NCBI GenBank assembly: GCA_009103225.1
Contig: RHPI01003508.1
Coordinates: forward strand, 1 to 64,000
Reading direction: 5' to 3'
From: Chlorokybus atmophyticus
Taxonomy: Eukaryota; Plantae; Mesostigma and Chlorokybus algae
Length of the DNA stretch: 64,000 bases
This document shows, piece by piece, positions 29,887 to 42,921 of the stretch. Under the pieces are notes generated by a model. It did not search any database, was not told the DNA's origin, and worked only from the letters and a program-made list of their open reading frames with translations. The position numbers and the translations under genes were made by a program. Numbering within the stretch: the first letter of the stretch is position 1; each line of letters opens with the position of its first letter.

Positions 29887-31804
29887 ATGGCGGTGGACGT
29901 CACAGAGGTGAGGGTGCTGAAGTTGACTTGAGCAATACATATCAGCCATTCGACTCACGCCTACTTGGTTGTTGTTGTTGTTACTGTTGTTGTTGTTGCT
30001 GATGATTTGTTGTTGTCGCCGTCATTGTGCATTCTGCTGTCGCTGTTGTAGTGGCTGCTGTTGTCGCCTTTGTTCACGCACGCGCACCTTCACTGCTCAA
30101 TCCTTTCAGCTTGGTAATCATCCAACCCTTCCACATCTGATCATCATCGACTGTTTGCTGTGGTATGTGCGGGACCAGGTGCAGATTCCACAACCCAACA
30201 CCAAAACCTCACAAGAGGATAACAGCACCACTGAACTACCCACTACATCCGGCCGCCAGCAGCAGTCCAGAGACAGAGACAGAGACAGAGACAGAGACAG
30301 AGACAGAGACCTTCCGATCCGCCCCAGTACCAACACTCTCTCCCCACACATCTCGTTTGTGCTCCAACATCTGTCCTTGTCTCACATGTTGTGTCACACA
30401 CACAGCAGCTTCAAGAGGGGATTATTGGGAGCTGTTGGGCGAGCTCAAAGCCCGCGAGGCCGATCTGATCCCCAAGCTTGAGCGCGTCGTCACGCCGGAG
30501 TGGCTGCACAACCTGGGAAGGAGGCAGATCGTACTGCTCATCGCCGAACTACTACAGGTGATAGGGGGATGGCTCACGTGTGCGAGTGCACGTGCGCGCA
30601 TGCTCACGCATACACACTCGTGTCTGCTGGTGTACGTGATTGATACGACACTTCATGGGAGTCGTACTTAGTAATGTGTATGATCACAACCATGGCAGTT
30701 GAGCGCGAGGACGGAAAGGGACAGGGAGCGACGATGGGAGGACGCAGTGAGGCTGATGCTGTCGAAGCAGAACGAACTGCGAAGCCACGCATTGACTAGG
30801 TGAAACACCTTGTCAATGACTGCATCCACACGCGTGCACACGCTCCACATATGTACTCGCACGTGCATACCCTCCACGTAGGTCTGCATACATGCGTGCA
30901 CACACGCGTACGCATGCAAGCATAGTGCACAGTCTCATGCACAGGTATGCGCGCGCGCGCACACACACACATGCAAGTACGCATGCTCGCGCACATGTAC
31001 ACACATGCAAGCACATACGAGCACACGTACTTCCCTGTTCCTAAGCAACCATCATACCCAACCACTATACTGCACGCAGGCAGGCGGAGAAGATCAGGAA
31101 AGAGTGGGCCTGGTTGTTGGCGCGGCGGTCCAGGAGAGGCGCGGGGGCTTACTACGAGGCCTTGCGCAGGGACGCTGCCGCCCGCGTCATCCAGAGGCAT
31201 GCTGTTGTTGTTGGGTCGTACGCGCGCATGCACTCATCAACACATACCCACAGAATTACAAGCATGGGGAGTGTACAGATGTGTGATAATGGTTGGTGAT
31301 GCGGTGTTTCATGAATAGGTGTTATAGGAGGTACGTCATAGCGCGAAGCATGGAGAAGGAGAGAAAGGCCAGCAGGCAACAGCGCTGGCAGGCCGAACTC
31401 ATTATGGCCATGCAACAACGCCTCCAAGTAACGATCAACTGCCATACGAACATGAGCAATGATCTCTTATGTCTTATGCCTAAATTGGACGTATGCTTAT
31501 GTGCACTCTGCACATCTGTTGATATGCGCATATGCTTGTATTGCAGCAACCCCTGCTGGCAGCGAAGGTTATGAGGGGTTTACACCGGTCTTCACACGGT
31601 CACACTCATCATCCACCTTCAAGTGGGAGTGGCCATGGTAATCCTATCAACAGCAGTCACGACAACAACAGTGCTTCAGTCACGGGGAAAAAGCAGCAGA
31701 GGAATGCTGGTGAAGGCGTCAATAAGAGAGGAGAGCAACAGAAAAACAGCAGTGTCAACAGTGTTGGCATTGCCAGAGCGTCATCCGGCAATAAGGGGAA
31801 GTAG
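29887..31804 (+). CDS. IQ-motif-containing coiled-coil protein of unknown function, multi-exon
   Basis: Exons splice as MAVDVTE | ...ASRGDYWELLGELKAREADLIPKLERVVTPEWLHNLGRRQIVLLIAELLQ | LSARTERDRERRWEDAVRLML | RQAEKIRKEWAWLL...AAARVIQR | CYRRYVIAR (IQ motif) | QPLLAAKVMRG...stop at 31804. The 5' exons are uncertain. Confidence 0.65.
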
Positions 31805-32072: not shown

Positions 32073-33352
32073 TCAAGCTATATGTGGCCTGTTTGCATAT
32101 CCTCCTCCTCCTCCTCCTCTTTGTGTTGATGACTGGGGTCTCAGCCCCACCGTGCGCGTGTAGCTGGACAGCAGCGACATGAACGCAAACATCACCGAGC
32201 ACGCCACCTGTAAATGCGGGGTGTTTTTGTAGAGTTGATTTGCGTGGGCAAGAAGCCAGGTCTGTCATGAGCTCGTGCGTTGTGATTGTTGATCAACACC
32301 AAGGACAACGTGTTGCAAGACAGCATGGATCTGAGCGGTGAATGAACAAACATGCAACGAAAAGCGCGTTCTGGGGTAAGTAGTGGTTGCTTGCTGAAAT
32401 TGGGAACCTTCATGTTGGGTAAACATGCATGAAAACTTGAGGGAACCCACAACTGGCAGATGAAGCCAGCATGGGTGCATGGTATGTGTATATATGCATG
32501 TGTGCACGATTGTGTGCGCAAACGACCGTGCAACTGTGTTCGTGTTCGCGCGCGCTTGCGTGCGTGCATGCGTGCGTGCGTGTGCGTGTGCGTGTGCGAA
32601 AGCAGTCTCACCTGTTTGACATCCATTTCCGACTTGCGCAGCCGAGCGCACGAGCTCATGACGGCCAGCAGGGATACCCAGCAACCCAGCTTCACCTGTG
32701 TGTCATTGTTGTTGGCCGATGTGTTCATGCATGTGGGTATATGCATATACCTACATGCATGAACATGGTGTAAAGGCCTATATAAACTGCACAATTTCCA
32801 CCACACTCGGCAACACCAGCATATCAGTAATGACGGCAAGCAATGGATATTATAATTACAACAATTGCCTGGACGCTGCACGCTGTGCTTTGAAAGTCCA
32901 ACAAGTCAACTGATGCGCAGAGAAGGCGTACATGTCGGTATGGACCCAGTGCAATAACAGTAAAACCACTCCAACAACAGTACCAACAACACCCACCACC
33001 TACAGTTGGAAACAAGGTTGAACGTTTAAACGCACACACAATCAAACAAACATACGCACGCTCAGAGGCAATACAAGTTAAAGGTATAATAGACCCCTTG
33101 ATAATCCAACAGTACAAAAACACAACATCCCAAACGCTCCAACAAACACATCCCAGTCACACAACTACAAAACCACCCCTCCACCTTGAGCAGCATCCCC
33201 ACGAGTCCCGCCACCAGCCCGACGATGCCCGCCACGTCGATCGGCAGCTCGTCCTGCGGGATGGGCTTGGGCCGGAACTCCCGAGCAAGGGAAGGGGAGC
33301 GGGGGTCCGCCGCCGCCGCCGCCGCCGCCGACGAGGAGCGGGGAGGCGCCAT
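32073..33352 (-). CDS. WDR83OS: PAT-complex subunit Asterix (UPF0139), 3 exons
   Basis: Exons 33352-33185, 32695-32612 and 32207-32073 give DPRSPSLAREFRPKP...PIDVAGIVGLVAGLVGMLLK|VKLGCWVSLLAVMSSCARLRKSEMDVKQ|VACSVMFAFMSLLSSY, matching the Asterix family pattern. Confidence 0.85.
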
Positions 33353-34051
33353 GGAGAGGGACACAGCGAACTGCAGTGGCTGGGTGCAATTCGTGTTGTG
33401 GGGCTGCCTCGGTAAGTTACACAGGCTTAGTTGTCTCAGGTCTCGTCACTTTGGTGGGTCGAAAGTCTTAGGGAGAATGCGAGCGGCCTGAACTACAAGC
33501 CACGACATAAATAAACATACCGTAGTAAGAGGCGCAGAAATGACAATGACTGACCACACAACACACGTTTTAAGTTGATAATTTCAGTACTGTTGAGTTG
33601 TATATGTACCAACAGAAATGCTCGCCCTGTCTCAAAGGGTTGCGTTGCAGTCTGCAGAGACAACGTGCTTATGCTTGCCATGTATCTGCATTACCAGTTC
33701 TCTGCATAATAGTATAAAGACTTGCACATATGATCCACACATCAGGTAGCTAGTTTCTGCAATTTATCCTGTGCATGCGCGCGTGCACGTGCGCAAAGTT
33801 ATTGATTGGGCATGTATGGACAACAGTCACGCACAGTCAGTCAGTAAGTTGCGTATGCACCAACACTACTCACAGCAGTTTAGCATTTTCGTAATACACA
33901 CTGCTTGTCTCGACAATTGCGTCACGTGCAACAACACTGCTAGCAGCTGGTTAGAACACAACCAGAGTGGTATAGCTAAGCTGCAATAATTGTTCAAATC
34001 ATCAAACACCAACTAAGCGCAGTCCTGTACCTCTAATACATCAAATACAAT

Positions 34052-37000
34052 TTAAAGTCCTCCTGACTCTGCTAAACACGTATCGATATGCATGTTCATG
34101 GTATCGTTGCTCGTGCCGGCTGGAAATCTCAAGTGGCACAGCGGGCATTCGGGTGAATGCGAAGCAGGTTGGACAACAGGATTGGGGCGCATGTCAACAG
34201 TAGTATGATCGTTGACCATCTCAAGGCCAGACCCGTCGGGAGCCAGCTGGTCCGGTGCGGACCTGTGCTTGAAGTTGCCAACATTGCGCTGGTGGGCTCT
34301 TCTGCGCCGCCACAACACGAACAACAACAACAGCAATGCCATGCCAACAATGGACCCCACGACGGCGCCAACAATTGCACCAACATGCGATGAGGATGAC
34401 CCTGAGAATGTCAAGTACCCGCCTGACTCTGATACCACTCTGCTGGAGTTTGCAACAGGACCCGGTTCGGTTAACACCGAACATGAGGCTGTGCTTGTGT
34501 CTGATTGAACTTGCAACTGCGCGGCTCCCTCCAGATAGCAATAAGGGTCTCCAAATCTCTGGTAGCCCTGTGATTATTGATGGTGAGCGGCCAGAAGACA
34601 TACAAGTGTGCTGGCAGTATCGGTTGGGTGGGTGCCACACACACTCACCTGATAGTACTGGTTGAAGATGGCATTTGCGTTATCCAATGTGCACGCTGTT
34701 GAACTACATGGTATCCCGCCTGTGCTCGTATCACAGGCCTTTGCAATACCCTGCAGCATATTCTTTGAGTGATGTATATCAAGGCTTATGGGCATGACGA
34801 CACTTGCACGATGGTGAGTAAGGACGACACAATGAGGTCAGGCCACTAAGTGTACAAGCTGTGTACTTGCACAACGCTTGTGAGAAACATGTTTGTGTCA
34901 TGAGTGAAAAGCATTTGCACTCTGGAGCACACTTACCGCACACAGTGTGCTTTCGGGCACATCCATACGGGCAACGCACTTCACAATGCCTCCAAGGGCC
35001 CCAACGCCGCCGCTGATCCCAAAACAGTTCTGCAAGTCACTGCCACTTGAGGTGCCTTCGTCAGACCGCTGCAACCACAACCAAAGCGTATGCAGAAAGG
35101 TCACTTGCTAGTGCATTACCCAACATCAGCGTACACAAATGTTTTTGTGTTGTCCACACACTGCCACCCCAGCGGAGAGGCAATGACGCGAATGGCAACA
35201 ATGGTCACCTGATATACGCGAACATAGTCCACAATCATGTCTGGTTGAGGCCATGTAGTACTTTGGGTTGGCTGCTGAGCATCTGTTAAAAACTTACCGC
35301 CTGCATCAATGCCAATGAGCTGTGGCTGCAACATGCAGTCAAGCAGTTCCAACACGCAGCAGTGGCTCACGAAGCTTACCTACGGCAACATTCAACAGCA
35401 GATGAAAGGCTTCATTGAATGGAGCACCAAACTGGCTTCCATAAGGGTTCTTGGGTGGGTATGATACACTTGGGTCCTGCAATGTGTGTTTATCAATGTG
35501 TTGCAAACGGCATGACTGAACACAATGCACTGTTTGCTAGCAATGCCAAAGCACACAATTGTAAGAATTTGCAAGCACTGGCGGAATTGTTTACAAACCT
35601 GTTGAAATCCGCTATTGTAGAATGAGCGCGCAAGACTTTCTGTATAAAAGATGACGTTGTCCACAGACCACGTCATCTGATCTTGGCCCCACTCCAAGGC
35701 AAACACATGGAAGTCTTTGGAAAAGTCATTGACACAATGAAAAGCGGTGGGGCCGGCACCAACACTCGTTACATACGGATACACATCTCCGTACCAAAGT
35801 GTTCCTTGCACAAAACCAGGCTCGTTTCCTCTGTGCAGCCAACAAACAAGATGAGAAGAGAACAACCCCTTGCACTTCAAAGATAATGAAACCGACTGCG
35901 TGCATGTTGTATGTATATGTTGCACACGTTGCACGTGTGCGTGCGTGAGTGGGCGCGCTTGTGCGCGTGTACATGTGTTTATGCACGTGAATGAGCGCAT
36001 GCCAATGCACTGCAGCACTTGAAAAAACAACGTACCGCATCTCCATGATGTCTATTTCGCCTGATGCTGCCCATGCACCATACACTTGCTTGGTTGGCAG
36101 CATCCATATGGCAGGCCAAAGGCCATCAGCGTGTGGTAGCAATGCCCTGATTGCAATGCGCCCGTACGTCCACGACGCAGAATTGTAATCGGAATGAATG
36201 CGTCCTGATGTGTAATCGCTCTGAACACCTGACCCATTCGTATATGACTCGCGGATTGGCCTGATCACCAGGACACCATTGTCCTGGCAGCAAAACACAC
36301 ATGCTCATCAACATTCAGTTCAGCAGCAATGCGTGTTCAAGTATGGTTTAATGCCCTCCGGCCGTGCAGGTGACAAGCAACCCATCTTAAAACCATTGTA
36401 TTCATGTTTTGTAGCACTTGTTCGCAACCAATGGCTGAAGTATACTAGGAACAACCTTCTGCGAAAAAACGCAGAAAAACTCACCTTGTCTACGAAAACG
36501 TTATTGGGCGAGTCTGTGTAGCACTGCAGTTCCTGATTGCCACCACCATCGCAATTCACCTGATTATAAGGCAGATAACGAATAAAAGTAGAGAGATATC
36601 AGCTATTCGTGAAATAATATTGTCAGCTGTAGTGCAACAGCCTAAGAGTGAAACATGAGGCCACTTGCGACAATCCTTACGATTAGTCCACTTACAGACG
36701 CAAGCAGTCACATGCACAGAGTGGAAGCACTACAATTTACAATCATCAGTGACGAGGCCGACATGGGCAGGCATTACGCTGCACACAACAGCAGCACATG
36801 CCTGGCAGAGAACCGTTCGCATAACGAAGCTGTACGACAGGGTATGTGCATGACATTCAGGCATTCAGGCAGCAGAACCAGCGTGAAGAGTACTTAATAG
36901 CGCATGTGCACCTCATAAGTCCATTTACTCCTGTCCAGGCTCCCGCTACCGAACTCGTCGCTCCAGACCAGCTGCCATGGACATCCGCCACCCGGGGCGG

Positions 37001-37112
37001 GGCTGCTTGAGTCCACTGCGGCTCCCAGAGCCGTGCATATTAGCCCCGCCAACGACCCCCAGGATAACAACGCCACCGCCGCAACCAACCGCATGCCACA
37101 CCCACTGCACAT
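34052..37112 (-). CDS. Type-I membrane protein: signal peptide, GH16 laminarinase-like beta-1,3-glucanase, X8/CBM43-like module, TM helix, cytosolic UBZ-like zinc finger; 9 exons
   Basis: GH16 motifs WQLVWSDEF, GGGNQELQCYT, YTSGRI, GLWPAIWMLP, WAASGEIDIMEMRG, FHVFALEW, PFNEAFHLLLNVAVGG, MIVDYVRVYQ. X8-like KCVARMD...TLCA|GIAKACD...PCSSTAC...ANAIFNQYYQ|...ASC. TM VGAIVGAVVGSIVGMALLLLLFVLWRRRR. C-terminal ECPLCHLRF...MNMHIDTCL. Confidence 0.88.
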
Positions 37113-37927
37113 GCCCACCTCTCGCTCCCTGTGCTCAACCTCAGCATGGGCTCCTTAGCAGCTCGCCCGCCATCAAGTCAGCTTGAAGCCCTCCGTGGCA
37201 ACGACAGCAAAGGAACCAAACCTTATCCGACGTGCCAAAGCAGCTGCAGACACGCTGAATGACGACCACGACGACCGCCACGACGACACTACGCAAGGGA
37301 ATGTTGGCAAAGGCAGTGCCCCTGCACTCGAGCATGCGGCTGCCCGGCTGCACTTACCGCGGAGCGACCGCAGTGCGCAATGCTCGTGCGCTGTAGGGAT
37401 TTCTTGCTCTGCGCTTCGCTGGGGCCGGTTGCACTGAATCGTCATCGCTAACTGCATAGCCCTTTATATCAATCTCATGTAGCCGTGGCTAGTTGGCTAA
37501 GCGGCTTAAGCCATTGGATATCGGTTATATTCACGGTTAGAACGCTCCACCGTGCGCACGCGTCAAACATTCAGGAGACGATGCTGCGACGGAGTGGCAA
37601 ATGTCGGCTCATAGGCGACAGGCCAGCCGATACGCCGCCTGTCGATTGTCGGCGCATAGAAGCTCTTCCCCGAGTGAGTTATTTTCAGGCTTGTAACAAC
37701 CTACAACGAAGCGGTGACGCGCACTGTAGTGGTTTGGCAAAGGCCACAGCCGGGCAAACGGCAAAACCCTAACTCTAGCTGGTTGGTGAATCTGGCGTTG
37801 GCAACAGGCTTGAGGAGGTGGCGGTGAAGGCGGTCGTGGATGGCCGGATCGGCGGCGGCGGAGCTGTGAGTGTGCTTGGATGTTGATACCCTGCGCCTAA
37901 GGGGAAGCTGCGGGTCATCTGAGCACA

Positions 37928-40900
37928 ATGTCGGACTCCAAGTACTTCACAACCACCAAGAAGGGCGAGATTCATGAGCTCAAGCAAGAGCTTAACACGC
38001 CCAATCGGGTATGTGCAATGCTGTGTCAAATGGACGTGCCTTTGCCCAACGGGTGGTTGACACGGGCGGATTGCGGTTGGGCTGCAAACATACACACATT
38101 CATCACCGCGTGCATAGCTGCATGCGTTGCAAATCCGACAATTCGGGGTTACTGTTTTGGACGATTGGTGCGCATCAATGACCATTGCCGCGCAAGATAA
38201 TCACTATGTCATCGTGCTACATTTGCTACGTTTAATCCTAAATCAGCCATGTTGGTCACAATCAGCCACAGTTTTTCGGTGTGGTTTGCATGGCGACTGT
38301 TGTTCAACGCTTATGCCGTGCAACCGACTGTTCAACCGACTGTTGCAAGAATGTTTCATAAGTCACTTCTCCACGCATTAGTCAGCTTCGCCACGTAGGA
38401 GAGGTGCCAGACTTCACCCATGTACACGATGATGCCGAGATGTTGGTTAGTTGTGCGTAGTTGCCTTTCTCTGCTGACTGGCCAATGCAAGGGTTAAATC
38501 GCAGTTTGGTGCACACAAAATTATCAGTTGTGCCATGAGTCGTGCACCTATTGTGTGCGATATGAAGTCGAGCAACACAACTTTGTCTACACATGGGGTA
38601 GTCAACACCAAGTTTCATGGCAGCCCATACTTGACTGTAATACTATGACAGCAAGTATTTACAGGAATAATTGCAATGCAAAGGGAGCTGACTTTATTGG
38701 CTGCGCAGGACAAGAAAAAGGATGCCGTCAAGAAAGTCATTGCAGCCATGACCGTCGGCAAGGATGTGTCCATGTTGTTCACAGATGTAGTGAACTGCAT
38801 GCAAACGGACAACTTGGAGTTGAAGAAGCTGGTGTACTTGTACCTCATCAACTATGCCAAGACACAGCCCGACCTAGCCATACTTGCCGTTAACACCTTT
38901 GTCAAGGTGCGGTTGGTTGACCATGGGGGTTGCTTTGGTGATGGGGCCACATGCATCCACTGTAAAACACAGCACTGAGTAAGTTTCTATTGCCACTAGT
39001 GCCACTAGTGTTGCAGTCCTGGATGGCGCATGCTTTGTAAACCACAGGGCTCAGGATTGCCAATGAACCAGTTTTGCAATGCTGATTTGCGATGGCATCT
39101 ATGTTGTTACCGTTTCAAGTGCGCATAGATGATGGGCCTGGATGCGTATCCATTGAACCACAGCACTTAGTAAATGGCCAGTGTTACAACACTAAGTTGC
39201 AATTGCATCCATGTTGTAACTGTATTCAGTGCCAATGTCATGTCCTGAGTGCGATTGTGCGTCAATATAAGCTCAGCCGCGCACATGCCATTGATGCAAA
39301 CTCCCATTACAACTGCTATTGCAAACAGGACTCCCAAGACCCAAACCCTCTGATCCGAGCTCTGGCTGTGCGTACTATGGGGTGCATTCGAGTGGACAAG
39401 ATTACAGAGTACCTCTGCGACCCATTGCAGCGGTGCTTGAAGGTGACTTGTATCTCTCGCTGCGATGCAGTAGTATGCGAGGTTACGAAAGCCCATTGTC
39501 AAGCCAACACCATTACCTGCATTCTCGCCAGCATGCACTGGCTGATGTTTCTACCATTCGCAGGATGATGATCCGTATGTGCGGAAAACAGCAGCTGTCT
39601 GTGTTGCCAAGCTGTATGACATTAACCCGGAGTTGGTTGAGGACCGTGGCTTCCTCGACACGCTGAAAGACTTGCTGAGCGACAGCAACCCTATGGTCGT
39701 GGCCAATGCAGTTGCATCACTTGCTGAGATCCAGGAGATATCCTCGCATGAGATCTTCCAGATCACCGCCCACACCTTGTTTAAACTCCTGGCGGCTCTC
39801 AATGAGTGCACTGAGTATGTGCTACGTCTTAATTTGCCTAGCAGGAAACCAGATTGCAGATCGATGTTGTGAAACTTCGCAGTACGGTGCTTGAATTTTT
39901 GTTTCACTTCGCAGGTGGGGTCAGGTGTTCATCCTTGACGCTCTTGCTGGATACCAGGCTCGTGATGTCAGAGATGCAGAAAGCATTATCGAGCGTGTTA
40001 CTCCACGTCTTCAGCATGCAAACTGCGCGGTACGCTGTCTAGCGTTGTACTGGACACGCACTTGCATGCCCTAATATCAAATTGCCAAGCCTAACCTTTG
40101 ACTGTGCAGGTGGTTCTGTCCGCCGTCAAGGTTATCATGAAGCAGATGGAGCTGATAAAGAATGACGACATTGTGCGCCAGCTGTGCAAGAAGATGGCAC
40201 CACCACTGGTCACCCTGTTGTCTGCTGAGCCGGAAATCCAGTATGTGGCGTTGCGCAACATCAACTTGATTGTGCAGAAGCGGCCCACAATCCTCAGCCA
40301 TGAAATCAAGGTTTGCATTTGGCTTGAGCTGTGTTGTGCATGATTAGTATTGACCGATAAAGTTCTTGGCCACCAGTGTTGCATGCCAACTTTATCTGCT
40401 TCTGCAGGTGTTTTTCTGTAAATACAATGACCCCATCTACGTGAAAATGGAGAAGCTGGAGATCATGATCATGCTTGCCAATGAAAAGAACATCGACCAG
40501 GTACAGAATGTTGCTGTGTGGCGTTGACATGGTTTGGGTTGTGATTCAGCGGCGCTTAACATAGGTGTTGTATCATACACATCCTAGACTCACTGCATGT
40601 CGTGCAAATGCCAGGTGCTGCTTGAGTTTAAGGAGTATGCAACTGAGGTGGATGTGGACTTTGTGCGTAAAGCTGTACGCGCCATTGGTCGCTGTGCCAT
40701 CAATCTTGATCGGGCAGCAGAACGGTGCATCACTGTGCTGCTCGAGCTCATTCAGACCAAAGTCAACTATGTCGTCCAAGAAGCTATCATTGTTATCAAA
40801 GACATTTTTAGGCGATACCCCAACATGTAAGTGCACCCATGGGCTACTTGCGCTACAATAACCTAGAGCACTGCACCTATGTTTGGTTCTTACAAGCGCC

Positions 40901-42921
40901 TTGACGCTACGTGCAGGTATGAATCGATCATTGCAAACTTGTGCGAGAACCTTGACACATTGGACGAACCTGAGGCCAAGGCGAGTATGATTTGGATTAT
41001 TGGAGAGTATGCTGAGCGTATTGACAATGCAGAGGAGCTTCTTGAACAGTTTCTGGAAACATTCCCCGAGGAGTCTGCACAGGTTTGGGGACTGTCAATA
41101 CTTCACCCTTGTAAACATGTTGCTGAGATTGAAAGCCTGAGGGGGCTAACTCAATCAATTGCTGCAGGTTCAACTACAGCTGCTGACGGCAACAGTCAAG
41201 CTGTTCCTGAAGAAGCCAACTGAGGGCCCGCAAACCATGATACAGGCTGTGCTAAACAATGCAACACAGGAGACGGACAACCCTGATCTTCGCGACCGCG
41301 CGTACGTTTACTGGCGGTTGCTCTCGACAGACCCTGAGGCTGCCAAAGATGTTGTCCTTGCGGAGAAGCCAGTGATATCCGACGATGCCAACCAGCTGGA
41401 TCCCGCTCTACTGGACGAGCTGCTGCGCAACATTGCCACTCTCTCATCAGTGTACCACAAACCTCCGGAGACTTTTGTGAGCCGTACGCGTGCTGCAGTT
41501 ATGCGTGCTGATGAGGTAACAGTCGGAGTGAAGCATTCTGCCAGATTAGTCTTTGTATGCCTGTTACATGAGCCAACCTCTGGATGTTGCAGGTGCACCG
41601 ATCAGTGGACGAGGATGGCTCAGAGGAGGTCTCAGCTCCCATGGAAGGACTGCCTCAGACAGCTGCGCCTCCGGTGTCTGATCCGTTTGGTCTGGGTGCT
41701 GCTCCAGCTCCTGCAGTTGCTCCCAGGTAGAGCACGCATGCACGCGTCATTCAGATGTACAATCATGGCTGGTTGTCATCCTGGTCACCATGAGTAACAG
41801 CCTGCTCAACACGCCGTTGGTCGCAGGGCGGTCGCAGCAGCTGCGCCTGTACCCGATCTGCTCGGCGATCTGTTGTCGCTGGACTTGGGTCAGTCCACTC
41901 CAGCACCGCTGCCTGCATTGCCGCCCGCAGCGTTACCCGCGGCGTCCATGCCTGCCGGCGACTTTGGCATGGGTGACTTTGGCATGATGAGTGCCCCCCC
42001 GCCATCGGTTGCTGCACCGCCAGCCCCAATGGCCATCAGCAAGCCTATCCTTCTCCCTGCCACAAAGGGCCAGGGCCTTGAGATCTCAGGCCAGCTGGCG
42101 CGGGAGGCGGGGCAAATAGTCTACGATCTGACCTTCTCAAACAATAGCTCGACTGTGCTTGATGGATTTATGATTCAACTGAACAAGAACAGCTTTGGCC
42201 TCAGCCCTGCTGGGCCTTTGCAGGTGAACACATCCTTGCTGCAATGGGCACTGCGTGACAGTATGGTGCTGATAGCATTTGTCAAATTGTTGCGACCTAG
42301 GTTCCTCAGGTGCAACCTGGTGGTGTTGCGCATACCAAGCTGCACCTTATTGTAGATGAAGCGAAGGTTGCACCTCCTCCTATAACCGGAATATTGCAGA
42401 TTGCCCTCAAAAACAACCAGCAGCCCGTCTGGTACTTCACAGATACCGTTCATCTGAGCGCCCTGTTTGGGGAAGACGGTGCCATGGACCGCGGTGCATT
42501 TCTCGAAGCTTGGAAGGCTCTGCCCGAGGTTCGTGCACTGCTCTGAGGCTCTCTGCGTTGATGCAGAGCGCATGTTGTAAACATGTGTTGGTCAAGCTGA
42601 TGTTGGATGCCAATGTTTGCTGCTGATGTCTTGCAGGAAGTCGAGCGAACAAGAGACTTTCCCGCCATCCCAATCAGCAGTCTGGACGCGCTGCTTGCAA
42701 AGTTGCAAGCCAGGAACATCTTTTTCATTGCACGCCGAACGCTTAAGGACACGAACCAGGATGTCCTGTACTGCTCACTGAAGTTGCCGCGAAACATCCC
42801 TGTTCTGGTGGAGATCAAGTTCATGCCGGGCATGCCAGGTGTCAGCAGCGCGTGCAAAACGCCCCACCCAGAACTTGCTGACCTGTTCTGGCCAGCACTG
42901 GAGGAAGTCCTCCGCGCATGA
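37928..42921 (+). CDS. AP1B1/AP2B1: AP-1/AP-2 complex beta subunit (beta-adaptin), multi-exon
   Basis: [108 protein letters not shown], hinge [11 protein letters not shown], then ear/appendage exons to the stop at 42921. Confidence 0.97.

Follow-up and report, generated by a model that had tools for sequence, protein, structure and literature searches.

The locus considered here raises two questions, namely, whether a single gene of Chlorokybus atmophyticus joins a glucanase domain, a putative glucan-binding module, a membrane helix and a ubiquitin-binding-type zinc finger, and what a protein of this design might do. Such a gene had been outlined in an earlier note on the window, by which we mean the whole stretch of 64,000 nt that was analysed (assembly GCA_009103225.1, contig RHPI01003508.1, positions 1 to 64,000).

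Gene model and membrane topology

The coding region (34052..37112, minus strand, as are all features below) runs from the ATG at 37112-37110 to the TAA stop codon at 34054-34052. In the predicted splice model, all eight introns have GT...AG ends and nine exons join in frame into a 564-aa product, as had been claimed; this product is identical end to end to an independently annotated public protein, EukProt EP00898_Chlorokybus_atmophyticus_P008523 / Chrsp88S08060 (P0001). The other features read from the sequence earlier were all reproduced as well: the hydrophobic N-terminus, the EIDIME motif, the Cys-rich module with NAIFNQYYQ, the transmembrane (TM) helix with RRRR, and the tail with CPLC and HIDTCL.

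Exon 1 (36912..37112, aa 1-67) contains the start codon, a signal-peptide-like hydrophobic segment and the beginning of the GH16 domain; exon 2 (36485..36559, aa 68-92) carries the GGGNQELQCYT motif of laminarinase-type GH16; exon 3 (36036..36283, aa 93-175), matched by the Pfam family PF00722 even when taken alone, encodes the GH16 core with the catalytic motif. The domain continues through exons 4 (35599..35830, aa 175-252) and 5 (35380..35476, aa 253-285) to its final strands (VDYVRVYQ) in exon 6 (35209..35300, aa 285-315). A linker and the start of the X8/CBM43-like module (KCVAR, C346, C358) are encoded by exon 7 (34937..35068, aa 316-359), the middle of the module (C365, C374, C379, NAIFNQYYQ) by exon 8 (34649..34750, aa 360-393), and the X8-like end, a Ser/Thr-rich stalk, the TM helix and the finger tail, followed by the stop codon, by exon 9 (34052..34567, aa 394-564), which is separated from exon 8 by an intron of 81 nt.

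The model could be an artefact, with the TM and finger part lying outside the mature mRNA because polyadenylation occurs early or an intron was missed, or with two genes merged, and we found no orthologue that would confirm the C-terminus. This explanation appears extremely unlikely given the structure of the last exon and the identical public product. The alignment of the protein with PDB laminarinases spans exons 1-6 end to end, and the X8 alignment crosses the exon 7/8 and 8/9 junctions, hence exon 9, and with it the TM helix and the finger, is part of this one protein. The X8-like end, the helix and the finger all lie within this one uninterrupted exon, so that a transcript stopping before it would split the X8 module; the exon is open over 171 codons, and the probability of observing by chance the 150 stop-free codons past the X8 end is about 7e-4. 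According to the Chlorokybus genome paper, 9,066 out of 9,300 gene models have transcript support. The locus is one real C. atmophyticus gene, which, as judged from its sequence, encodes a predicted type I membrane protein.

The topology of the product is clear. It has the features of a type I single-pass protein, i.e., an N-terminal signal-like segment, one TM helix and a positive-inside flank. The N-terminal hydrophobic segment covers aa 9-27 (helix 9-28 in the AF2 model), with probable signal-peptide cleavage near aa 30. The Ser/Thr-rich stalk (34388..34504, aa 415-453) is disordered in the model and has one N-x-S sequon, at position 433. It leads into the TM helix (34310..34387, aa 454-479), a Gly-zipper with GxxxG repeats whose region is matched by the TM_ErbB1 and Gly-zipper profiles; the second hydrophobic segment is at 458-476, and AF2 models a helix at 454-490 with pLDDT 87-92. 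The GxxxG-rich helix and the RRRR that were expected here are thus found at aa 454-479 and 480-483 (34298..34309), respectively, the latter being a stop-transfer, positive-inside signal. The cytosolic tail (34055..34309, aa 480-564) comprises 85 aa with one Lys, at position 493; since it follows the hydrophobic helix, the latter is not a GPI signal. Known vacuolar sorting motifs (YxxPhi, dileucine) are absent from the tail as read from the sequence.

Catalytic domain and X8/CBM43-like module

The assignment of aa 45-316 to GH16 is certain. The domain is full-length and of the laminarinase type (GH16_3-like): it scores 60.9 bits against PF00722 (Pfam cut-off 22), matches 3ILN with E 4.6e-44 over aa 46-315 and 3AZX with E 1e-40, at 36-38% identity, and is modelled by AF2 as a beta-jelly roll with pLDDT above 90 for aa 45-316. 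Foldseek aligns the model with 4DFS, 3AZX and other laminarinases (E 1.8e-25, TM 0.85 on target). The catalytic motif E168-I-D170-I-M-E173 (36041..36058), containing the nucleophile, the helper Asp and the acid/base, has the one-residue bulge typical of laminarinases; the claim of an intact E-I-D-I-M-E motif therefore holds, with the motif at 168-173. All 26 invariant columns of the GH16 alignment, including E168, D170 and E173, are kept in the protein, the columns being taken from an alignment of 73 homologues that includes the query. As every family-invariant residue is retained, the domain looks like an active enzyme rather than a lectin-like sensor. It is probably a catalytically competent endo-beta-1,3-glucanase that would cut beta-1,3-glucan outside the cell.

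The closest characterized homologues across aa 45-316 are GH16 subfamily 3 laminarinases, namely, LamR from Rhodothermus marinus (3ILN), Lam16A from Thermotoga maritima (3AZX) and ZgLamA from Zobellia, which share with the Chlorokybus protein the jelly-roll fold, the E-I-D-I-x-E motif with its bulge and the GxGNxELQxYT motif. These enzymes are bacterial and archaeal, soluble or secreted, some with CBM6 or CBM4, whereas the Chlorokybus protein is membrane-anchored; the named laminarinases have no CBM43, no eukaryotic type I anchor and no cytosolic finger.

The Cys-rich module that follows (34505..34987, aa 343-414, spanning introns 7 and 8) had been assigned to X8/CBM43, and this claim stands in part. 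On the one hand, its score against Pfam X8 (PF07983), 12.2-13.9 bits (E 0.09-0.3), is below the cut-off of 25.7. On the other hand, several tests, each of them weak, agree. X8 is the only Pfam family that matches the region, covering profile positions 3-75 out of 76; hhalign of the module with X8 yields E 0.0048, and out of 2000 shuffles that preserve its composition, 17 attain the score of the real module. Residues C346, C358, C365 and C403, the pair Y391-Y392 and a Gly occupy invariant columns of ten Pfam-validated X8 modules, with NAIFNQYYQ at aa 385-393 preceding C403. With a joint profile, Gel4 is matched in its CBM43 (E 2.8e-6), and a single-sequence search of the module against the PDB gave no match. 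The AF2 model of the module alone has low confidence (pLDDT 50), so fold matches can be counted as weak support only: the order of elements is strand-helix-helix-strand, the best Foldseek match of this model is again the CBM43 of Gel4 (E 0.66), and VIA-align lists only Gel4 (Z 4.2) and the C-terminal domain of Ole e 9 (Z 3.8) with Z of about 4. The profile search for short X8-only proteins produced a single match. These concordant signals from sequence and modelling suggest that the module may be a divergent X8/CBM43.

Similar ectodomains occur elsewhere. Protist metatranscriptomes commonly contain GH16+X8 and GH16+TM proteins, and those compared here (GH16-X8 proteins P0210, P0150, P0146 and GH16-TM proteins P0124, P0125, P0200, P0225) fall into the same GH16 clade as the Chlorokybus protein, a eukaryotic clade whose separation from bacterial-like sequences has an SH-aLRT support of 100%. 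As in the Chlorokybus protein, the X8 modules of these relatives directly follow GH16, or a single C-terminal TM helix is followed by a short tail. At the same time, the Chlorokybus X8 is much more divergent, the protein lies outside their X8-bearing clade, and the short tails of other eukaryotic GH16+TM proteins are unrelated to its tail.

Two further families offer a functional comparison. Land-plant GH17-X8 glucanases and PDCB proteins likewise place a beta-1,3-glucan enzyme or binder with X8/CBM43 on the outer face of the membrane, and the Chlorokybus protein probably has, by analogy, a comparable job in callose handling. It is not a member of that group, as its catalytic family is GH16, a jelly roll, whereas GH17 is a TIM barrel, and it has no GPI signal; the plant proteins have a GPI anchor instead of a TM helix and hence no cytosolic part. 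Invertebrate GNBP/betaGRP proteins link the GH16 fold with beta-1,3-glucan at the cell surface or in body fluid, but they are secreted and have lost the catalytic Glu, which the membrane-anchored Chlorokybus protein keeps; with its catalytic residues intact, it is not an inactive sensor of the betaGRP kind.

The cytosolic finger and the distribution of the architecture

The tail ends with a predicted UBZ-type CCHC zinc finger (34067..34153, aa 532-560; C534, C537, H553, C557), with CPLC at 534-537, HIDTCL at 553-558 and the ligand spacing C-x2-C-x15-H-x3-C. The claim of a UBZ-like finger is supported at threshold level by PF18112 (TAX1BP1-type UBZ, cut-off 23.2) for the tail alone (26.4 bits) and for exon 9 (24.3 bits), and by the match of the tail to the TAX1BP1 UBZ (5AAS, E 4.5e-5); the scores fall just short of the PF18112 cut-off for the full-length protein (22.6 bits) and below that of PF15750 (17.1 bits, cut-off 25). 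Alignments of the finger with FAAP20 (2MUQ), Pol kappa (7NV0) and TAX1BP1 (5AAS) are gap-free or nearly so, and the finger has FP after the second Cys, the H-x-D-x-C-L end and the conserved acidic D555. For this region, AF2 models only the C-terminal helix 547-560, with pLDDT 57-67. A chance zinc-finger motif was rejected, as translating the 64-kb window in all six frames yields the motif just once and a profile matches it. Thus, at threshold level, the tail finger is predicted to be of the UBZ4 (CCHC) type.

The finger has the CCHC ligands, spacing, FP and H-x-D-x-C-L in common with the UBZ4 fingers of RAD18, WRNIP1, FAAP20 and Pol kappa and with the UBZ of TAX1BP1/NDP52. The proteins just named all act in DNA repair or autophagy and are soluble, in the nucleus or the cytosol, whereas the Chlorokybus finger forms the C-terminus of a transmembrane glycosidase. 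Not every UBZ-like finger binds ubiquitin; of the pair in TAX1BP1, e.g., one does not.

The full combination had been thought undescribed, and the searches agree. Exhaustive HMMER comparison of exon 9 with 1.84 billion representatives revealed no other protein with this C-terminal half; it returned the protein itself, look-alikes in the TM or low-complexity parts and one soluble tandem-UBZ protein (P0026). A word-based search with aa 320-564 found no relative, none of 341 pattern matches in a metagenome scan with exon 9 was confirmed, and no orthologue of the full protein was found in the databases searched. Among the best 120 matches, neither X8 combined with a TM helix nor a zinc finger was observed. 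Parts of the set, GH16+X8 and GH16+TM, are by contrast not rare. As far as sequence comparison can tell, the predicted GH16 + X8-like + TM + UBZ-type finger architecture is confined, within the databases searched, to this one protein, a singleton of a single species.

Predicted function and competing explanations

We propose, with about an even chance of being right, that the gene encodes a type I membrane beta-1,3-glucanase with a divergent X8/CBM43 module, a Gly-zipper TM helix and a UBZ4-type tail, whose residence at the surface is tied to ubiquitin. The ectodomain of GH16 and X8/CBM43, held on the Ser/Thr-rich stalk, would face the cell exterior or a lumen, where it would bind and cut beta-1,3-glucan close to the membrane; the substrate may be the callose-like wall glucan of the alga itself or glucan of contacting microbes. 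On the other side, the finger would bind ubiquitin or a ubiquitinated partner, and endocytosis, multivesicular-body sorting and turnover of the enzyme could thereby be linked to the ubiquitin system. Such coupling via the finger is a plausible inference from the tail sequence.

The finger could also be UBZ-shaped and yet not bind ubiquitin, docking instead another cytosolic partner (a motor, adaptor or ligase) or being a recent addition, specific to this lineage and of little function, in which case the protein would simply be a membrane-anchored glucanase. The profile scores are indeed at threshold level (22.6-26.4 bits), the best PDB match is TAX1BP1, whose paired fingers have different partners, and no conserved orthologue of this singleton protein was found, other eukaryotic GH16+TM proteins having unrelated short tails. 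We nevertheless consider this somewhat unlikely, as the spacing, the FP and the H-I-D-T-C-L-A-E-S end match the UBZ4 of FAAP20 and Pol kappa position by position, and the Asp of H-x-D-x-C is retained. The proposed ubiquitin-tied enzyme could, on the other hand, reside inside the cell, e.g., in a vacuole, a lysosome-like compartment or cell-plate vesicles, with a lumenal ectodomain digesting soluble or nascent beta-1,3-glucan and the tail sorting it via the ubiquitin/ESCRT route. The topology is identical for lumenal and extracellular exposure, ubiquitin-binding tails would fit multivesicular-body sorting, and protists with beta-glucan stores often have TM-anchored GH16 enzymes. However, the storage glucan of green algae is starch rather than laminarin, a CBM43 and a stalk of the glycosylation type are typically seen in proteins that face the wall, and the tail has neither YxxPhi nor dileucine, which makes an endomembrane location improbable.

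The description of the protein as receptor-like is not supported. A glycan-binding ectodomain, a single TM helix and a protein-interaction tail form a receptor-like layout, the Gly-zipper helix could mediate dimerisation, and GH16-derived glucan sensors exist in invertebrates; a kinase-less surface receptor might thus sense beta-1,3-glucan of callose or microbial walls and signal through ubiquitin chains or ubiquitinated signalling proteins that its tail recruits. But the known GH16-derived sensors have lost their catalytic residues, whereas here every catalytic and invariant residue is kept; no Pfam match at E up to 10 was found to kinase, signalling or LRR/LysM/malectin domains of receptor-like kinases and proteins, TIR, death and other signalling domains being likewise absent; and no family of similar proteins suggesting a receptor repertoire was found. 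We regard a receptor role as distinctly unlikely. Its most specific form seems very unlikely: a prototype, ubiquitin-coupled glycan receptor of the earliest streptophytes, in which contact with own callose or with fungal or oomycete walls clusters the Gly-zipper helices, and the UBZ tails capture ubiquitin chains or ubiquitinated adaptors, leading to signalling or ligand-induced endocytosis. If true, it would point to a way of sensing wall integrity or microbes that is older than receptor kinases with glucan-binding ectodomains.

Returning to the membrane-anchored glucanase with a ubiquitin-tied surface residence, callose in land plants is handled by GPI-anchored GH17 enzymes and X8 proteins without contact to the cytosol, while in Chlorokybus, near the streptophyte base, an X8/CBM43-like module is paired with a laminarinase-type catalytic domain instead, a pairing that may show beta-1,3-glucan turnover before the GH17-X8 set-up. 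In addition, a real TM helix links the predicted glucanase with a ubiquitin-binding-type finger in the cytosol. If this finger binds ubiquitin, the protein would be, to our knowledge, the first cell-surface glycosidase with a UBZ on its tail, and it would offer a simple testable model in which wall-modifying enzymes are under the control of ubiquitin-dependent trafficking.

The locus neighbours a beta-adaptin gene; a functional link was rejected, since gene neighbourhood carries no such evidence in eukaryotes. Finally, the Chlorokybus genome paper lists no Chlorokybus member of the endo-1,3-beta-glucosidase family, and hence the GH16 protein could fill this role.

Gene model and its public counterpart

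The gene lies on the minus strand, and its nine exons (37112-36912, 36559-36485, 36283-36036, 35830-35599, 35476-35380, 35300-35209, 35068-34937, 34750-34649, and 34567-34052) splice in frame into a product of 564 residues, with GT...AG borders in 8/8 introns and intron sizes of 79-352 nt. When the last exon was used as the query of an exhaustive HMMER search, the 564-aa public protein P0001 (EukProt EP00898 Chlorokybus atmophyticus P008523 / JGI Chlat1 Chrsp88S08060) was identical to this model over its full length. Thus, the nine-exon model proposed in the earlier note is the public annotation, and the window comes from the nuclear genome of a streptophyte alga that diverged early. The Chlorokybus genome models were made with transcript evidence, 9,066 out of 9,300 coding sequences being transcript-supported (PMC7027972). 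Table 1 of the same paper gives Chlorokybus a count of zero for both endo-1,3-beta-glucosidases and GH16 (the latter counted as XTH); hence the gene has been annotated but not discussed there, and the laminarinase-type GH16 of the window is not reflected in that table.

The annotated start codon at 37112 is overlapped by a 35-codon out-of-frame uORF (37040-37147, minus strand; ATG at 37147). Codon 7 (37094) is another in-frame Met, and a signal peptide starting there would be more canonical.

Catalytic domain and X8/CBM43-like module

The GH16 domain (aa 45-316; PF00722, 60.9 bits) aligns end to end with the laminarinase of Rhodothermus (3ILN, E 4.6e-44) and with Thermotoga 3AZX (E 1e-40); its AF2 model has pLDDT above 90 throughout and matches laminarinases in Foldseek (E about 1e-25, TM 0.85 on target). 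In the alignment with 72 homologues, 26 out of 26 invariant columns are kept, including Glu168, Asp170, and Glu173 of the EIDIME motif, which agrees with the intact catalytic motif described earlier and does not fit a catalytically dead glucan-recognition protein. Judged by sequence, the protein is a GH16 member with the signature of an active, competent-looking laminarinase-type (GH16_3-like) endo-beta-1,3-glucanase.

The Cys-rich module that follows (aa 343-414) matches X8 (PF07983) as its only Pfam family, over profile positions 3-75 of 76, at 13.9 bits (E 0.09), below the Pfam cut-off of 25.7. Pfam-validated X8 modules directly follow GH16 in 11 of the best 120 whole-protein matches; compared with the profile of these modules, the query module yields E 0.0048 (hhalign), and only 17 of 2000 composition-preserving shuffles reach its score with the respective HMM. 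Cys346, Cys358, Cys365, Cys403, Tyr391-Tyr392, and one Gly occupy invariant columns of the MAFFT alignment with the validated modules, and the joint profile matches CBM43 of the fungal glucanosyltransferase Gel4 (8PE2, E 2.8e-6). Modelled alone, the module is poorly predicted (AF2, pLDDT 50) with a strand-helix-helix-strand order; the best Foldseek match of this model among 350,542 chains is again Gel4, although its E of 0.66 is not significant, and the matches listed at Z of about 4 in the VIA re-alignment are Gel4 CBM43 (Z 4.2, 4.0) and the C-terminal CBM43 of Ole e 9 (Z 3.8). Each of these tests is weak taken alone, yet they are concordant, and the module is probably a divergent X8/CBM43. 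The X8/CBM43 assignment of the earlier note is kept as probable on profile, shuffle, and column evidence, with a score below the curated threshold.

Membrane helix, finger, and relatives

The module is followed by a Ser/Thr-rich disordered stalk (aa 415-453), a Gly-zipper TM helix (aa 454-479; AF2 helix 454-490, pLDDT 87-92), and, directly after it, RRRR (aa 480-483), which opens an 85-aa tail reaching the C-terminus. The helix, basic stretch, and short tail are as previously noted, and signals of type I topology are present. Near the tail end lies a finger, C534-x2-C537-x15-H553-x3-C557, with Asp555 present; the 64-kb window, translated in all six frames, contains this motif nowhere else. PF18112 (TAX1BP1/NDP52-type UBZ; Pfam cut-off 23.2) scores above the cut-off on the tail alone (26.4 bits) and on exon 9 (24.3), and below it on the full protein (22.6), and the UBZ_FAAP20 model gives 17 bits. 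Among PDB sequences, the best match is the TAX1BP1 UBZ (E 4.5e-5), followed by FAAP20, Pol kappa, RAD18, and WRNIP1. FAAP20 aligns with no gaps, the C-L-A-E-S end included, and the two Pol kappa fingers have H-V-D-x-C-L in common. The UBZ4 call is thus reasonable judged by sequence: the cytosolic C-terminus bears a UBZ-shaped CCHC finger with putative zinc and ubiquitin binding.

Many sequences from bacteria and metatranscriptomes share 43-48% identity with the GH16 domain. In the maximum-likelihood tree of GH16 columns, the query lies, with its placement not resolved, at the root of a clade with 42 members, which is probably eukaryotic since these are mostly ~1.5-kb metatranscriptome contigs. 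A split with 100% SH-aLRT divides this clade from 31 sequences whose contigs are long and of bacterial type. X8-bearing GH16 sequences form a nested subclade with the query outside. Several of the best 120 matches combine GH16 with a C-terminal TM helix and unrelated short tails, but none has X8 together with a TM helix, and none has a zinc finger. Apart from TM/low-complexity look-alikes and P0026, no relative of the C-terminal half was found with exon 9 among 1.84 billion representatives, nor of aa 320-564 in a word-based search, nor of exon 9 in metagenome contigs; these searches agree with the unfamiliarity of the full architecture, and the protein is a singleton. P0026 (L001, a Logan transcript-like contig from SRR29757261, positions 473-1090) is soluble, 205 aa long, and contains a pair of canonical UBZ4 fingers (CPIC...HVDECL and CPIC...HIDECL); no other database protein resembles the tail by virtue of the finger. 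A 30-residue finger shared alone falls below significance in libraries this large, and hence other TM+UBZ proteins may exist in Chlorokybus. A non-exhaustive literature search yielded no obvious description of a GH16-CBM43-TM-UBZ protein or of UBZ on a transmembrane tail. Another membrane GH16 with a protein-interaction-like module on the cytosolic tail is the metatranscriptome protein P0124, whose aa 412-449 weakly match SMN_Tudor (16.5 bits, below the cut-off).

Possible roles and neighbouring genes

The protein resembles a beta-1,3-glucanase that is tethered to the membrane and bears a glucan-binding module, a role taken in land plants by GPI-anchored GH17-X8 enzymes and PDCBs; it is not one of these, as its catalytic domain is GH16. 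New for an enzyme of this kind is its real TM helix together with a ubiquitin-type finger. The enzyme would act on beta-1,3-glucan beside the membrane; callose is known from streptophyte algae, though no data turned up for Chlorokybus in particular. The finger may tie it to ubiquitin-dependent sorting, affecting its endocytosis, its delivery to MVBs, and its turnover. The significance would be much greater if the finger proved to bind ubiquitin, or if other surface proteins with UBZ tails were shown to form a family.

The receptor-like reading of the earlier note is unlikely, since the catalytic machinery is intact, a signalling domain is absent, and the searches turned up no family of similar proteins; on the same grounds, intact catalytic residues reject a betaGRP-type sensor, and the lack of a signalling domain, a receptor kinase. 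Alternatives to a ubiquitin-sorted surface glucanase are that the finger binds a partner other than ubiquitin, or that the protein resides in endomembranes. Least likely is an artefact of the gene model. The splice junctions are independently backed by homology: an unbroken alignment to solved laminarinases covers exons 1-6, and alignment to validated X8 modules bridges the 7/8 and 8/9 junctions. Uninterrupted exon 9 holds the module end, TM helix, and finger, so that a transcript without it would cut the module short, and a run of 150 codons without a stop, as seen downstream of the module, would arise by chance with a probability of ~7e-4. One single gene encodes all parts.

Upstream, in divergent orientation on the opposite strand, lies a multi-exon gene of beta-adaptin, a clathrin adaptor large subunit (38676-42921, plus strand), whose ORF pieces match Adaptin_N (80.8 bits), Alpha_adaptinC2, and B2-adapt-app_C. 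On the strand of the glucanase gene, ~0.7 kb downstream of its stop codon, lies a small Asterix/PAT-complex homologue (33062-33364, minus strand; Pfam ASTER, 23.8 bits, just above the cut-off), the ORF of which includes a TM segment. Neither neighbour is evidence on the glucanase function. At ~30250-30330 (plus strand), overlapping ORFs run through a simple repeat of dinucleotide or hexanucleotide type, which gives (RD)n / (TE)n when translated in two frames.
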